Counted from the first letter of the stretch, positions 1,389 through 8,581 are shown. The stretch is DNA of 64,000 nucleotides from Zancudomyces culisetae HAW-14-8 (GCA_052426225.1 JBNJNM010000021.1:3038001-3102000), one strand, 5' to 3'. Program-made: numbers and translations. Notes: a model not told the origin generated them from the sequence alone.

Positions 1389-1509
1389 TGTCAGGAAACT
1401 AATTTATTTAAGTTGGGAAACTTAATGTTCCCAAGTTAGGATTCAAAGGTTATTAAATATGATTAAAAATAAATATTAAAACTTATGGGTAAATAATGCG
1501 ATTCTGACA
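1389..1509 (-). repeat. 3' LTR (121 bp)
   Basis: Identical to 6874-6994; TG...CA ends with a 6-bp terminal inverted repeat. Confidence 0.97.
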
Positions 1510-1512
1510 TTA

Positions 1513-1522
1513 TCCCCCCTTC
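1513..1522 (-). other. Polypurine tract (GAAGGGGGGA)
   Basis: Purine run on the minus strand 3 nt upstream of the 3' LTR. Confidence 0.9.
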
Positions 1523-1568
1523 AAAGAATATTTTAAATATATAAAAATAATATCTTGGACAAAAATGT

Positions 1569-1835
1569 GAGCTTATAGTCGAGTGGCTAAGGCGTCGAAC
1601 TTGTATTCTGCAGGACCCTGGTTCGATCCTTCGCTGTAAGACCGTAATTGGGAAGTAATTAGCTGTAGAGTGGATGTGATGTTTCACGGGGCCAATGTGC
1701 GCGATAACGTCCTTCGGGACTAGTACCGGACCGTTTCACCTCTCCGATAACTCCTTCGGGATCTCGAGCAGTTAATTCGAATCACGTGATCGTGTGGCCC
1801 AAGACGTTAGCGCCCTCCTAAGTTCATTATTTTTT
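1569..1835 (+). ncRNA. Putative Pol III-transcribed, tRNA-derived structured ncRNA encoded antisense inside the retrotransposon 3' region
   Basis: TATATAAA at 1538-1545 (about -31). A box TAGTCGAGTGG 1576-1586 and B box GGTTCGATCC 1620-1629 at tRNA spacing. T6 runs at 1830-1835 and 1837-1842. 5'/3' terminal stem (1569-1596 with 1803-1825). Two C(UUCG)G hairpins (1709-1720, 1752-1761). GC-richer island inside very AT-rich flanks. Confidence 0.7.
1576..1629 (+). promoter_or_regulatory. Internal RNA polymerase III type-2 promoter (A box 1576-1586, B box 1620-1629)
   Basis: Matches TRGYNNANNGG and GGTTCRANYC. The distance from T8 (1576) to T54 (1622) is 46 nt, as in tRNAs. Confidence 0.75.
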
Positions 1836-1842
1836 ATTTTTT
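1830..1842 (+). terminator. Pol III terminator (two T6 runs)
   Basis: First run of 5 or more T downstream of the A/B boxes; it falls 4 nt after the terminal stem closes. Confidence 0.6.
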
Positions 1843-1949
1843 CTTTTATAATTTTTTATGCTTTTTAGTTGTTTTTAGGTTGTTTTTATAGTTTTTTTGA
1901 TAAGTATTTAGGTATAATATTGGTTAAATAATAAAATATAATGTTGCTC

Positions 1950-4900
1950 TTATGGTTTGTTGTGATATGTCTTATAGTATTTTTTCAATAGTTGTGGCGC
2001 GTTTATGTTTTCAATCGGCTCCCAGCTTCTTTCACTTATGTCAAAGCCTTTCCAATCAACTAAGTAATATTTTTTACCCCGTACAAGCTTAGAATCCAAA
2101 ATAGCCTTAACTTCATATTCTTTATTTCCATTTACAATTAGAGGTGGTGGCAGACTGTTTATTAATCTGCGGTTACTGCTGGGTTCGATATACGGTTCCA
2201 ATAACGAGACATGAAAAGTGTTATGGATTTTCATTGATGGCGGGAGGTCTAAACGGACAGAAACAGGATTGATGATTTTTGAAATAGTGAATGGGCCTAG
2301 AAGTCTATGGTCAAGCTTTTTAGAAGGCCTTTGAGTTTTGATATTTTGGCTGGATAGCCAAACCTTGTCACCTAGTTTATACTTTGGATGTTCAGATCGG
2401 TTTACATCAGCATACTTTTTATATTCCTGAGATTTCTTGTTAAGTATGGAAGTGAGGGCTGATTGAAGTTCTTTGAGTTGTTTTATCCTATCAGAAGCGC
2501 TGGGAACTTGAACATTTTTAGTGATTTGAGGATCAAATCTTGGATGGTAACCATATAGAGCAAAGAAAGGAGAAGTATTAGTGCTGGAGTGGAGAGTGTT
2601 GTTATAAGCAAATTCGGCAATTGGGAGCAGTTCAAACCAATTATCTTGCTGATAGTTGATGAAACAGCGTAGATACTGTTCCAATGTTTGATTCACCCGC
2701 TCCGTTTGACCGTCTGTCTCTGGATGGAAGGCTGTAGACATTCTAGTATCAACTTTGAGCAGTTTGAATAGTGAACTCCAAAATTTGGACGAGAATTGGG
2801 TTCCACGGTCAGAGATTATGGCGTCTGGTAGTCCATGAAGCTTGAATACGTGGGTAAAGAAGGCGGAGGCAGTTTCTTCTGAGGATGGCAGCTTCTTAAG
2901 CGGGACGAAATGGCTCATTTTAGTGAACCTGTCTACAACTACCATAATAGTAGTGTGCTTGTTGGATGGAGGAAGATCAGTTATGAAATCCATGGTAATA
3001 GATTTCCATGGGCCTGAAGGAGCGGGTAGCGGAAGTAGTTTACCGTAAACTTTGTGTCTTCTGTCCTTTGATCTATTGCATGTATCACAGGTTTGAACAA
3101 ACTCTTTAATAAATTTGCGCATTCCTGGAAACCAAAAGTCTCGTTCCACGAGCTCCAATGTCTTCTTAGCACCAAAATGGCCGGCTGGGCCACTGTCATG
3201 TCTAGAACTTACGACTTGCGGCTTCATTTTGTCGGGGACGACAACACGGTTTCCAAGCATTACAATCCCATCTTCAACTTCTACTGGCTCGTTAGACTTA
3301 TGGCTGCTCTGGTATCTTGCGGCATCCAATAATCCTTGTAGATGGGCTTTGCTGGATTTGGCGATTTCTTGAGCAAAATCACTGTCCACTATGCTGATAA
3401 TGTCTATGAAGTGGTCTTCGCCTATGATGTTGTTGTTGGCGACCTTATCAGGTGTGTGATTGGGCAAACGAGAAAGAGCGTCAGGTTTGCCTCCTTGAGA
3501 TCCAGGCCTGTAGGTTATGATGAAGCTGAATCTACTGAGATCAAGAGACCACCTTGCGTGTCTTCTGTTGAGTGACTTCAGATTTTTAAAGGTCTCCAGA
3601 TTCTTATGGTCAGTAAGAATCTTGAACGGGATGGAGGAGCCTTCCAGATGATGTCGCCATTCTTTGAGAGCCTTGATGATTGCCAAAAGTTCCTTGTCAT
3701 AGATATTATAGTTGGATTCGGCAGTGTTGAGTTTGTAAGAGTAGTAGGCACAAGGACGGAGATCACCGTTTTCATCTTCTTGGGACAGAGCAGCCCCAAT
3801 GGCGTAGTCTGAGGCGTCAGTTTCCAGAATAAACTGTTTTCCTGGGTCAGGGTATCTGAGAACGGGGGAAGTGGTGAGATCCTGGATAAGAGTATTAAAG
3901 GCTTCACCTGCCTCCTTACTCCAAACGAACGGTGTATCCTTTTTCAGAAGTCTTGTGATTGGCAGGGCTTTCAGCGAGAAGTATGGGATAAACTTTCGGT
4001 AGTAATTGGCAAAACCGAGAAACTTCTGGACCTCCTTGACATTGGTGGGTGGTAGCCATTCCTTTACACACTTGACTTTAGCAGGATCGGTGGCTATTCC
4101 ATCTGAAGACACAACATGGCCTAGAAATTCAACTTCCCTGATATGGAAGTGACATTTTTCGGCGTTACAGTACAGACCATTTTCAAGCAGCTTTTTCAGA
4201 ACAGATTTCACGTGAGAGATGTGAGTGTCAGTGTCATTGGAAAATATCAAGATGTCGTCAAGGTATGCAATTGCATAGAGATCCAATACATCTCGTAACA
4301 CATCATTGATAAAGTGCTGAAAGGTGGCAGGAGCATTTGTCAAGCCAAATGGCATGACCTGGTACTCAAAGTGGCCATATCTGCACCTAAATGCAGTTTT
4401 CCACTCGTCACCTTCCTTGATCCGCACCAAGTTGTAGGCACCTTTGAGATCCAATTTTGTAAAGACCTTGGCTGTACGCAGCCGATCGAACGCCTCATCA
4501 ATCCTAGGTAATGGGTACCTATTCTTGATGGTAGCTTCGTTCAATCGGCGGTAGTCAACACAAAGGCGCAAGTCTCCAGACTTCTTCTTTACAAACATGA
4601 TTGGTGCACCGGCAGGGGAAACAGAGCGTCTGATGAAGCCATTGGTGAGGTTTTCACGAATGTAGCCTCTTAGAGACTCTAACTCTACTTCAGATAGCGG
4701 GTATATTGGCCCCCAGTATGGGGTGTAACCCTCTTTGGTGTTGACAGGACAGTCATAACGGCGGTGAGGAGGAAGTGAAACGGCAGACTTGGGATTGAAC
4801 ACCTCCTTGAATTCAGAGTATATTACTGGAAGTTGCGGAAATTCTTCCAAGTACTCTAGCGGGGACTCAGAAACGGCAAAAGTTACAGGATCTGGATCCA

Positions 4901-5905
4901 AGGAATATTCTGGCTCGGGGGTGGTGACTGGGGTATTTTTATGAAATGGCCGGGATCTGACGACTGGTTCTCTTGGCTCAATTTTCTTCAGGATTGCTTT
5001 GGGAAGTTCAGGTCTGAGTGGTACTTTTGAAACAGGGGTTACTGGACGACGGGGCTCAGGAATTTGCTTGATAACATGGTTATCTACTGGATTCTCAATA
5101 TCTGCGGGTTTGGGCAAGCTTTGGGTTTCAGGTTCTGGAGTGACTGATTGGACTGGTGCAGGAACAGGAACAGGAACAGGAAGAATCTCTTCAATTCTGG
5201 CGTATGGATTTGACGGAGCTGGGCTGGGGAGATCAGGAGACGGAGGCGGTGAAAATCTTTGATTTTCAGTGTTTGAATTGTCCAACTTGACTGATTCGAG
5301 CAACTTGGCACTGTGTGGAAGCAGGGTAGTTGATAATCTATTCAACACCCTTTGGAGGATGGTTGAGTTTGTGGACGTATTCTGACTGGTATTTTGTTCT
5401 ACTGGATCTGGATCTGGTTCATCAGGTGACTTGAACACGGCCTGGATGGAGTGGGTATCAACACAATTTGTACTGCAAAAGTCAGAGTCAAAGTGGATCT
5501 GGAGGTCTGGCCAAGTTATACTAGGATTGTGTTTGCGTAACCAGGGTAATCCAAAAATAATGTCAGCGTGATTGGTTGGAATCGGGATAAGGTCTAGGTG
5601 TTCAGAGTGGTTAGGACCGGACTTGATATGGGCATTATCAACCTTGACATTTATGCCCCCTGGGTATATCTGGTGACCATCAACACTTTCTAGGACGATG
5701 GTTTTTTCAGCTTCTTTGGTTGGGAGGTTTAGTTTTTCTAATAAATCTTGACGAATAAAGTTGGATGAAGCACCGGAGTCCACTAATGCAACAAGTTCGT
5801 ATAGATTATTTAAAACAACTTTAATATGAAATTTATTACTAGAAATATTAGAATTATTTGCTACGCTCAGGAGTAACTCCCGGACTACATCTGAGCACTG
5901 TCTTT
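1950..5905 (-). CDS. pol: Pol polyprotein (aspartic protease, RT, RNase H, integrase, chromodomain), expressed by -1 frameshift from gag
   Basis: ALVDSGAS (PR), YLDD (RT), ETDASDYAIG (RNase H), H-x6-H...CDTC plus MDF/SDRG/GQTE (IN), GPF motif, EYEVKAILDS...YLVDWKGF...WEP (chromodomain). The frame stays open upstream of 5783 through the gag stop. Confidence 0.95.
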
Positions 5906-6838
5906 TGGCACCCCAGGTATAGGGGGTCTTGGCCTGCGGAGCGGACAGTTACGGAGAATGTGGTTCGGCTGACCACAGTATAGACAAAGATTATTGGCTA
6001 ATCTTCTCTGGCGTTCGGCTGTATCTAGCGGTGCTCTTGGACGGGAGGTGACGGCATCAACGTCCATTGGTTCAGGAGCCTGGTGATCTGGGACAGGCAT
6101 GGCTGGACGGGGGAAAACCGGTGGAGCCGGAGTACTCCAGTTGCGGAATGGGACGCTTCTCTTGGGCAGGTAGGCACTGCGGGCATTGATTCTGTTCTCA
6201 AGCTCAATCACCTGATCAATGAGCTGATCCAAGGTGTTTGGTAGCGGTTCAGTGGCAAGGCGCTGGACAAGGCTAGTATCCAATCCGATGTAAAACAGGT
6301 GGATTTTGGCTGGCTCGTTGAATCCACTGAGAGAGGCAAGGTTTCTGAACTCGGTTGCAAATTCCAGGACGGAACGCTGGGACTGGCGGCAACTATGAAG
6401 CTGGATGATAGCTCGGGCTTGGTGGCCAGGGTCTGAGAATCTCTTTTGAAATTCATTCTCAAACCCTTTGAAGTCGGAGAGCAACGGTGATTGGGTATCG
6501 ATAAGGTTATCGAACCACAGGGCAGCATGACCGGCAAGGTGAGAACTGATGAACCATATCTTGTTATGGTCACTCTGGAACACGTCTGGTCTGGCCCAGA
6601 ACTGGCGCTTGATCTCGGCGGTGAAGGCTCGGAACCTTCCTGATTCTCCTGAGTATTTCTGGATTTCTGGTATTCTGATACCATCAATCCTTGGCTGCGG
6701 ATTTGGTGCAGGCAAATTCTGCAACTGACTGGGGACTTGGGCGGGTGTCTGGGCTTGAGCCTGGGCTTGAGCTTGACTTTCTTGCAAAGCTTGTTGCATA
6801 GCTAATTTTGCGATCTCATCTAATTGGTGGACCATCAT
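5885..6838 (-). CDS. gag: Gag (capsid plus CCHC zinc knuckle)
   Basis: Retrotrans_gag-like core (AALWF...F..RF...Q...SV.EF..EF), EPMDVD motif and CLYCGQPNHILRNC knuckle. First ATG at 6838 (the track starts at TTG 6853). Confidence 0.93.
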   Translation of the reverse strand: MMVHQLDEIAKLAMQQALQESQAQAQAQAQTPAQVPSQLQNLPAPNPQPRIDGIRIPEIQKYSGESGRFRAFTAEIKRQFWARPDVFQSDHNKIWFISSHLAGHAALWFDNLIDTQSPLLSDFKGFENEFQKRFSDPGHQARAIIQLHSCRQSQRSVLEFATEFRNLASLSGFNEPAKIHLFYIGLDTSLVQRLATEPLPNTLDQLIDQVIELENRINARSAYLPKRSVPFRNWSTPAPPVFPRPAMPVPDHQAPEPMDVDAVTSRPRAPLDTAERQRRLANNLCLYCGQPNHILRNCPLRRPRPPIPGVPKDSAQM

Positions 6839-6860
6839 TAACTCTTCAACCAATAATTAG

Positions 6861-6871
6861 AAGTTTCCCAA
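6861..6871 (-). other. Primer-binding site TTGGGAAACTT (self-priming type)
   Basis: Begins 2 nt inside the 5' LTR boundary and is perfectly complementary to AAGTTTCCCAA within the LTR (6898-6908). Confidence 0.8.
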
Positions 6872-6873
6872 AA

Positions 6874-6994
6874 TGTCAGGAAACTAATTTATTTAAGTTG
6901 GGAAACTTAATGTTCCCAAGTTAGGATTCAAAGGTTATTAAATATGATTAAAAATAAATATTAAAACTTATGGGTAAATAATGCGATTCTGACA
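6874..6994 (-). repeat. 5' LTR (121 bp)
   Basis: Identical to 1389-1509. Confidence 0.97.
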
Positions 6995-8581
6995 TCACAT
7001 CAGTTACTCATAAGTTTAATAGTCAAATTTATAGTTTGATAGCAACTTTACTTAAGAAAATTTTATATGGAAAAAATCTCTGGAGTAAAAGTATAAAAAC
7101 CCTTTCGAAATCCATCGAAAGAGAACTTCAGAGAAAAATATCTTATTCACTATTGAATACCATATTTTTCTAAATAATTAATAGTAATAAATAATTTAAT
7201 CTTAAAATATTCAAGTCTTAACAATAAAGGACTACACATCTTTTTCTTGGTCAATTAAGTTTGTCAATCTCGTTTATCAACTATAAAGATGTATTTAGTT
7301 TTTAATTTTATTTCTGTGTGTATAATATATATATTTTTAATAAGTTTTTTTAATTTACAGTCGTTAATTACTTGTCAACATTTTTGAGTATAGTATTGAA
7401 ATCTAACTGAGTGGCAATACTTTACATATTTTGACTTACCTCTGTTTCATTTTACTTTATTATTTTATATTAATATTAGCTATACTTATAGTAAGGATAG
7501 ATGTTATTTAATAGCGGTATTATAGAGTTTTGTAAACGTTCTTAATCTAGATTATCATGAAAACACAAGTTTATTAGTATTAAAAGTTTAAAAGGTAAAT
7601 TATAAATTGTCAAAACCAATAAACCAAACACAGGGTGCAAAATTCTTAACTCAACCACATTTGCAGAGCGACTAACGACTGGGTTTTGGTGCTTGAGTGA
7701 ATTTTTTACTAACATTACTAACTTCACAAGTACTGTGATTTTGTGACTTACAAATTGAAACTTGAATATATGTGCTAAATCAACCTTTTCTTAAAATAAA
7801 TACATGGTATTCCTGTCTTTCGCATCTTCAACTCGACTGATTTTTCATCAGTTTTTACTTACTATTTACTTTTTTTGTCTACAAGCTATCGATTTAAATT
7901 TTTAGTATCCATTATTAAATTGAATTTAACACAAGCAGTTGTTAATTATGGATAACCATATATATTGTGATTATAATACGCTTTTAATTTGCGGTATTCA
8001 GAATTAAATTTAATTATATTTACAACAGGATTAAACAAAGTTTGTTGTGCCAAAGAATATGTAAAGTGACTTGCCATGCATAACTTGCTGGTCATCACAA
8101 TAAATCTCTTGGTCAATCCCGCCCTACTACCTTTTAGTATTTTGGTATTCCATATATGCGAAGCCGTTTTATTTGTTTTCTGGAAATCGGTGCCCTTGAA
8201 ATATATTAACACACAAGGTTGGTGAAGGGTTCAAATATGATCAATGTATTTCCTTAAGTGAGGGTCAATATGAATAATTTAATATATCATTGTGAGATTT
8301 TTATATTATTGGAAAAAAGAATAAACTATAAAAGAGAAACAATCTGGACACCTTAATATAAATATTTTACTTCTACCACCTGATTTTCATGAAAGTAGGG
8401 TATAAATATTTTAACAACAGGGCTATGATGCTAATCCTATATTATTAACATCGTTTTACAAAAACATGTCTATTATCAACCCATTTTACTTTTAGAAAAG
8501 TATACAAAACAACCACTTCATTTGAAATTACAAGAAAACTAATATTTTCCCTCTTTAAACTCACAACACAAACAAGAATAG

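Follow-up and report, generated by a model that had tools for sequence, protein, structure and literature searches.

Why does a fungal retrotransposon carry, between its PPT and the stop codon of pol, an island of about 260 nt whose features read on the strand opposite gag/pol? We addressed this question in a window of Zancudomyces culisetae HAW-14-8 (the whole 64,000-nt stretch of DNA analysed here), which starts inside a 5.6-kb Ty3/gypsy LTR retrotransposon encoded on the minus strand. An earlier note on this sequence had described an AT-rich 3' region with a GC-richer, antisense island, and the composition bears this out, with a GC content of 51% in the island vs 24-28% in its flanks. The element that hosts the island is laid out as follows.

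1384-1388, with a second copy at 6995-6999: target-site duplication TCACA (5 bp), read directly
1389-1509, minus strand: 3' LTR, 121 bp, TGTCAG...CTGACA, a 100% repeat with 6873-6995
1511-1521, minus strand: PPT, AAGGGGGGATA on the element strand, with sister families arranged alike
1950-5783, minus strand: pol (protease, RT, RNase H, integrase, SH3, chromodomain), with its stop at 1950
5885-6853, minus strand: gag
6861-6871, minus strand: 11-mer TTGGGAAACTT at the PBS position, complementary to AAGTTTCCCAA
6874-6994, minus strand: 5' LTR, 121 bp, from the repeat match and direct reading

The PR-RT-RH-IN order, the C-terminal chromodomain, the LTRs, the PPT and the target-site duplication (TSD) are all present and define the element as a chromovirus. 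Both gag and pol are intact, and the element is autonomous. At its PBS position a tRNA primer site is absent; the 11-mer found there matches the element's own LTR instead, being complementary over 11 nt to AAGTTTCCCAA, which sits inside the 5' LTR at 6908-6898. This fits a self-priming (Tf1-type) element. The chromovirus is nested in another repeat (flanks 994-1388 and 6995-7231), and these flanks join without a break in L008 and L019 (87-97% identity), which provide an empty-site control for the insertion. Chromovirus copies were found in varied, often repeat-like DNA. The window also contains fungal host genes, among them one for an acyl-CoA ligase whose best named relatives are from Harpellales (36% identity). 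Differences among the chromovirus copies (window 1389-3328, L002-L019) were strand-asymmetric, with 124 G>A vs 45 C>T changes on the window plus strand, which on the coding strand of the element amounts to an excess of C>T.

Read on the plus strand, the island and its immediate borders resemble a Pol III unit with a tRNA-like head, a body and a T-rich end:

1538-1545, plus strand: TATATAAA, a TATA-like motif 24-31 nt upstream of the head, of doubtful significance
1562-1565, plus strand: AAAA, the likely Pol III start region, also the 4-bp target duplicated by two independent LTR-element insertions
1569-1596, plus strand: 5' strand of the terminal stem, acceptor-like GAGCUUA and its extensions (pair probabilities 0.5-0.99)
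1569-1644, plus strand: decayed tRNA-like head, from alignment to the genome's tRNAs
1576-1586, plus strand: A box TAGTCGAGTGG, from direct reading and a motif search
1620-1629, plus strand: B box GGTTCGATCC, 44 nt past the start of the A box, the canonical tRNA spacing
1645-1802, plus strand: GC-rich body, with an internal duplication and blocks common to sister families
1803-1826, plus strand: 3' strand of the terminal stem, UAAGUUC at 1819-1825 followed by the unpaired A1826
1830-1842, plus strand: T6-A-T6, a Pol III terminator-like run, with T6 at 1830-1835

The TATA-like motif, the A box, the B box and the T6 run had all been pointed out in the earlier note, and each lies where it was described. 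The B box GGTTCGATCC has its sole match within the 64 kb here, and the pattern AGTGG-N25-45-GGTTCGANNC matched once in the 64-kb window vs 0.00 expected (100 shuffles). The distance between the boxes falls within the 30-60 nt that define a type-2 Pol III unit. No run of four or more Ts interrupts the unit, the first after 1569 being the T6 at 1830-1835, but this is weak evidence, given an estimated chance of about 1/3 at 51% GC. Aligned to the genome's tRNAs, a set holding no class II nuclear tRNAs, the head scored z=4.9, above every shuffled head; its best nuclear match was tRNA-Arg(TCG), tied with several others, and no single parent tRNA was clearly best. The body contains a duplicated arrangement, GTTTCAC...CGATAAC-stem-UUCG, at ~1681-1720 and 1733-1762, and its blocks common to sister families are GTAATTGGGAAGT and TGGCCCAAGACG.

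Several simpler identities for the island were rejected. Its head keeps an intact D arm, and the acceptor pairs at 5/7 positions locally, the anticodon arm at 4/5 and the T arm at 3/5; with these weakened T and anticodon stems, no ARAGORN call, and no tRNA match in Rfam at E<=10, a functional tRNA gene was discarded, as had been anticipated from the sequence. More broadly, no Rfam family matched the window or 17 related loci at gathering or E-value thresholds. A protein-coding island was discarded as well, with stop codons in all six frames. We also set aside the TATA-like motif as evidence: it lies in AT-rich DNA, it is missing at this place from the intact sister copy L103, and its apparent counterpart in L102 is part of an inserted LTR. 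Real tRNA genes in this genome often have an LTR 7 nt upstream and thus cannot depend on a TATA box. Similarly, the alanine-identity feature G3:U70 exists as a pair here but is replaced by C3-G70 in the sister family L099, and is therefore not a kept feature.

The genome contains 19-20 copies of the island, all inside the same chromovirus and at the same position, and these copies are 97-100% identical over 1.9 kb. Searches of the genome with the head only and the body only (E<=10) recovered chromovirus copies alone and no free island, and no host tRNA closely matching the head was returned by a genome search at E<=10, which yielded element copies only. A tRNA-derived SINE was rejected on these grounds, as dispersed copies with their own target-site duplications were not found in the genome searches. 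The suggestion that the cassette belongs to the element and is not a SINE thus holds: every copy contains it, and no other place in the genome does. One chromovirus copy (L020, contig C21, ~1310823) is truncated at island position 1662 and has no head, making it a possible natural control.

Insertions of other LTR elements mark a single point just upstream of the unit. Two of the 19 head-bearing copies are interrupted, both at the same four bases (1562-1565). At L007/L098, an element designated B is inserted so that it ends 7 nt before G1569, with the TSD AAAA and both junctions read, and another copy of element B, 99.5% identical, stops 7 nt short of a real tRNA-Lys gene (L021). At L013, a solo 422-bp LTR, designated C, lies 8 nt before G1569 with the TSD AAAA; LTR C also occurs 9 nt upstream of a real tRNA-Ala gene (L055, L056). 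The same arrangement recurs in a sister family of 57% identity, where L102 carries a solo 486-bp LTR, designated E, 7 nt before its tRNA-like head (TSD AAAG), and L103 is the intact counterpart of this insertion site. LTR E is also present in a tRNA-Ala stack (L053, L054). From coordinates alone, four of the nine 3' ends of the 57% family break at the same site, and three further interrupted copies of this family were located by coordinates. The three inserted elements are mutually unrelated in sequence, B and C encode gypsy-type integrases, and all three insertions are co-directional with the unit, as those of B and C are at real tRNA genes.

No other insertions were found in this chromovirus family across 19 x 1.9 kb, and the chance of two random hits in one given 10-nt window is ~3e-5. 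Among ~30 real tRNA genes examined, at least 18 have a repeat that ends 3-14 nt upstream. The duplicated AAAA and AAAG were supplied by an A-rich stretch just upstream, which is common to tRNA genes and units. In yeasts, Tj1 inserts 5-11 bp ahead of mature tRNA 5' ends in a single orientation (PMC4600332), and Ty3 targets tRNA genes via TFIIIB (PMC5006619). Since an internal promoter is the chief feature common to varied tRNA genes and the units, and taking the targeting mechanism of B, C and E by analogy from such yeast elements, we infer that Pol III factors assemble on the units and would occupy them in cells, in the plus orientation. Together with the motifs, these insertions, which treat the unit as a tRNA gene, uphold the earlier proposal of a tRNA-headed Pol III-type unit opposite gag/pol.

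Additional features of these insertions and of the tRNA genes were observed. At L007/L098 (contig C13, ~324311-335171), element B spans ~10.9 kb between its junctions, far exceeding a simple gypsy element, and therefore probably holds nested insertions. Those 3' ends of LTR C (L051-L077) that abut neither their own interior nor a tRNA-type target are followed 2-8 nt on by the start of the next LTR (TGTCG... or TGTTG...); such series are ordered stacks, formed as elements inserted again and again at a single spot ahead of tRNA genes. Many of the tRNA genes also form tight pairs (L021-L050), with tRNA-Thr(AGT) and tRNA-Thr(TGT) 4-5 nt apart and the tRNA-Ala-tRNA-Lys and tRNA-Glu-tRNA-Met pairs 1-2 nt apart. 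These pairs are probably dicistronic.

To measure selection, we compared 17 colinear copies and counted differences only if they were common to at least two copies, and thus arose in replicating lineages:

Island, 1558-1826: shared polymorphisms at 2/269 sites
Pol third codon positions: shared polymorphisms at 38/459 sites (p=2e-6 vs island)
Adjoining AT-rich UTR: shared polymorphisms at 9/123 sites (p=7e-4 vs island)
Pol first and second codon positions: shared polymorphisms at 9/917 sites

The rate in the island equals that of the first and second codon positions of pol, and the body alone shows 2/181. Base composition is not the cause, as G/C and A/T sites agree. Within 1473-1828, positions 1706 and 1791 are the only shared polymorphisms, and the unit is under purifying selection (1473-1828). 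Site 1829, two bases ahead of the T-run, is hypervariable, which sets an edge of constraint at 1828/1829; constraint thus stops where the predicted RNA stops. On the other side, it extends without a break over the spacer and the PPT to the inner LTR. The boundary on that side is therefore uninformative and, as the constrained stretch reaches the PPT and the LTR, some of it could have a role in reverse transcription on the element strand.

The pairing of the unit's two ends gives a view of its predicted product. The outer pairings read GAGCTTA 1569-1575/TAAGTTC 1819-1825, GAG/CTC, GCTAA/TTAGC and CGTC/GACG, and the inner stem GGGCCA 1689-1694/TGGCCC 1795-1800 is likewise present in the sequence; every stem pairing reported before was thus found in place. 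Of the two C(UUCG)G hairpins described with them, both loops are present (1713-1716 and 1755-1758), the first on a 4-bp stem, but the second stem has only 3 bp. The best partner of the 5' 30 nt of the unit among 800 windows is its extreme 3' end, at -21.7 kcal/mol. This end-to-end pairing beats shuffles (p=0.016) and is weaker on the opposite, element strand (-15.4). The whole-molecule MFE, in contrast, is no better than that of shuffles on the plus (z=-0.30) or minus (z=-0.09) strand. The likeness to a VA-RNA panhandle therefore holds in part: the end-closing stem and the architectural resemblance stand, but the overall folding energy is ordinary and there is no Rfam relation. Within the family, whose compared copies are 97-100% identical, covariation had too few changes to draw on (22 segregating sites, mostly singletons), and the few changes inside stems are mostly wobble-compatible transitions, which offer little proof.

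More divergent families were more informative on this point. The genome harbors many chromovirus families; in most of those at 50-56% identity, the PPT follows the pol stop directly and there is no unit. In nearer families the 3' UTR is long and contains a GC-richer island, a B box in antisense and, towards pol, long T-runs:

L099, 62% identity: antisense B box GGTTCAAAGC
L102/L103, 57% identity (integrase-chromodomain region): antisense B box GGTTCGAATCC
L104, 56% identity: antisense B boxes AGTTCGAGTC and GGTTCGATTCC

The distance from the inferred start to the B box is 50-52 nt in three families, and the heads of the sister units scored z=3-4.6 against the genome's tRNAs. Short blocks are common to our unit, L099 and L103 (TAAGGCGTCG, GTAATTGGGAAGT and TGGCC..ACG), and these three units are probably homologous, judging from the shared blocks and from a MAFFT alignment that is reliable in the 3' block only. 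Two further copies of the L099 family, 87% identical, were located by coordinates. In the end stem of L099, UUCCGGU at the inferred start pairs perfectly with ACCGGAA, followed by an A and a U-run; this is the same geometry as GAGCUUA/UAAGUUC here, with all seven pairs different, and the L099 3' end is the best partner in its region (p=0.015). The terminal stem proposed at the outset is thus backed both by the pairing of the ends in our unit and by its being kept through changes at all 7 pairs in L099. Pairing analysis did not support an end stem in L103 or L104. The latter, present in six near-identical copies, has a second, perfect T-arm hairpin (CCGAGGTTCGATTCCTCGG) ~60 nt after its tRNA-like head and a T25 run, a layout that recalls the genome's tight tRNA gene pairs.

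Searching public protein data returned no relative above 56% identity. Of seven metagenomic relatives, two that are 81% identical to each other show an antisense B box 165-172 nt beyond the pol stop and, after it, a run of T4-5; no such box is present in the remaining five. Among relatives of this latter kind we observed in its stead, at the corresponding position downstream of pol, a called sense ORF of 116-140 aa with no Pfam match (L081 6521-6871, L092 5578-6000, L096 5491-5907). Only a subset of related chromoviruses, then, has a unit, and across families the B box is the best-kept motif, being found in our unit, L099, L103, L104 (two), L088 and L090.

We consider it likely, with these lines of evidence in hand, that the island is a gene-like Pol III unit carried and kept by this chromovirus lineage, antisense to gag/pol. 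The promoter part of the unit is well supported, if indirectly. In the mechanism that we propose, TFIIIC would bind the A and B boxes of the decayed tRNA-like head (1569-1644), and TFIIIB would be positioned just upstream of the head. Transcription would start in the A-run at ~1560-1566 and stop in the T-run at 1830-1842, giving an RNA of ~260-270 nt whose first seven mature bases would pair with the seven bases ahead of the unpaired A and the U-tail, as an acceptor-like closing stem. The body is conserved, constraint stops where the predicted RNA stops, and the end stem co-varies; from these we infer that this RNA is made, and it may serve the element. Our best guess is that a stable RNA may act on the perfectly complementary 3' end of the element, tuning its expression or copy number. 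The functions put forward in the earlier note, as an RNAi decoy, a copy-number regulator or a Gag-binding factor, are likewise guesses. More speculatively, bound TFIIIC and TFIIIB may keep the provirus unsilenced in heterochromatin targeted by the chromodomain. A broader picture, which we put forward tentatively and at somewhat less than even confidence, is that a clade of autonomous chromoviruses encodes its own tRNA-headed Pol III RNA gene, antisense in the 3' UTR and selected across families, with each copy acting as a portable tRNA-like beacon that recruits tRNA-targeting retrotransposons.

The main rivals to this reading are a boundary that acts through DNA only and a cis signal on the element strand, and both explain less. 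The first would have the B box, and perhaps TFIIIB, bound as in a tDNA or an ETC-type boundary, shielding the chromovirus from silencing and leaving any RNA a by-product. It draws on the B box being the best-kept motif across families, on an element that has a chromodomain and sits in varied, often repeat-like DNA, and on the targeted insertions, which report factor occupancy and not RNA. We regard it as unlikely, since such a boundary needs neither a conserved 180-nt body (2/181 shared polymorphisms), nor an edge of constraint just ahead of the T-run, nor a closing stem kept through seven compensating changes. An RNA or DNA signal acting in cis on the element strand near the PPT, in plus-strand priming, packaging, export or 3'-end formation, would make the tRNA look a relic of tRNA or SINE capture. 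The unbroken constraint across inner LTR, PPT, spacer and island is in keeping with this, as are a similar folding potential on both strands and a genomic RNA that includes the island anyway. However, the motifs kept across families are those of an antisense Pol III promoter (a B box 50-52 nt from the start, and a T-run), the element strand forms the end stem less strongly (-15.4 vs -21.7), the unit serves as a tRNA-gene-like target in the plus orientation, and more distant chromoviruses do with a PPT directly after the pol stop; we find this explanation decidedly improbable.

Two further explanations concern the origin of the tRNA likeness. An inert passenger, that is, a tRNA pseudogene or SINE that landed once in the 3' UTR of an ancestor and has hitch-hiked since, would account for a head-body-T-run layout that is the layout of a tRNA-derived SINE, and TRIMp3 elements are themselves thought to stem from a SINE insertion (PMC10886601). 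The selection signature on the island, the promoter motifs still present in families as distant as 56% pol identity and the lack of free copies in the genome make this highly improbable. Nor is the island likely to be a second primer-binding site for a tRNA. Ty3 has such a second, 3' site near U3, and its counterpart here would be a piece of genomic RNA able to pair with both the D and the T arm of a primer tRNA; the head, read antisense, is indeed complementary to a tRNA-like sequence. Yet the 11-mer at the PBS position is complementary to the element's own LTR and not to a tRNA 3' end, no host tRNA closely matches the head (genome search, E<=10), and the body, the T-run and the insertions would all go unexplained, leaving this the least probable of the explanations weighed. 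The antisense Pol III unit is thus the reading that we compare with known systems below.

The nearest described systems are the TRIMp3 elements, followed by viral Pol III RNAs. TRIMp3 elements (Cassandra, Helenus and Ajax) are LTR retrotransposons whose Pol III promoter stems from 5S or tRNA, and the tRNA-derived Helenus occurs in fungi (PMC10886601). They share with our element the presence, in an LTR retroelement, of a decayed small-RNA gene that keeps Pol III promoter motifs. However, TRIMp3 elements are short and non-autonomous, with a sense-oriented promoter inside the LTR that is thought to drive transcription of the element itself. Our carrier, by contrast, is a full 5.6-kb autonomous chromovirus, and the unit is internal (1558-1842) and antisense; the T-run that closes the unit prevents it from producing the template RNA of the element. 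In having a head like that of a tRNA, with both promoter boxes, then an unrelated body and a T-rich end, the unit also recalls tRNA-derived SINEs, but it spreads only as cargo of the chromovirus. The resemblance to adenovirus VA and EBV EBER RNAs lies in a short RNA (a predicted one here) that is driven by internal A and B boxes and whose 5' and 3' ends pair. Among viral Pol III RNAs, the MHV68 TMERs are closest in layout, having a non-functional tRNA-like head followed by hairpins (PMC4838037, PMC6926008), although those hairpins are pre-miRNA-sized and the UUCG stems here have 3-4 bp. Unlike VA, EBER and TMER RNAs, the unit has a fungal host and a retrotransposon carrier, and shows no sequence or Rfam relation to them.

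Regarding its role as an insertion target, the unit recalls the sites used by Ty3, Tj1 and the Dictyostelium elements DGLT-A and TRE5, as B, C and E lie 7-9 nt before tRNA genes in one orientation (PMC4600332, PMC5006619). Unlike the beacons of Ty3 and Tj1, the beacon here is carried by another mobile element, so that one retrotransposon creates landing sites for others. A parallel with chromatin boundaries can also be drawn. The gypsy Su(Hw) insulator is a chromatin boundary borne by a mobile element, and TFIIIC-bound B boxes and tDNAs are known barriers. Another boundary borne by a mobile element is the B2 SINE (PMC8136502). By analogy with these, the chromovirus may represent a transposable element with a protein-binding module that could insulate it; unlike plain barriers, its conserved body and end stem point to an RNA product too.

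In the literature, whose coverage here is incomplete, we came across no autonomous LTR retrotransposon described as having an internal Pol III unit in antisense. Known Pol III promoters of retroelements drive the element's own short template (SINEs, Cassandra, Helenus), and the others are found in DNA viruses (VA, EBER, TMER). If our reading is true, these elements would be the first LTR retrotransposons with an accessory non-coding RNA gene, adding an accessory-RNA layer to retrotransposon biology, and the 300-bp unit in a small fungal genome would offer a simple test system. The nested insertions are a natural experiment that marks probable tRNA-gene-like Pol III complexes without ChIP, and they show a direct interaction of two retrotransposon guilds, heterochromatin seekers and tRNA-gene seekers. 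One mobile element would, if this holds, reshape where others land.
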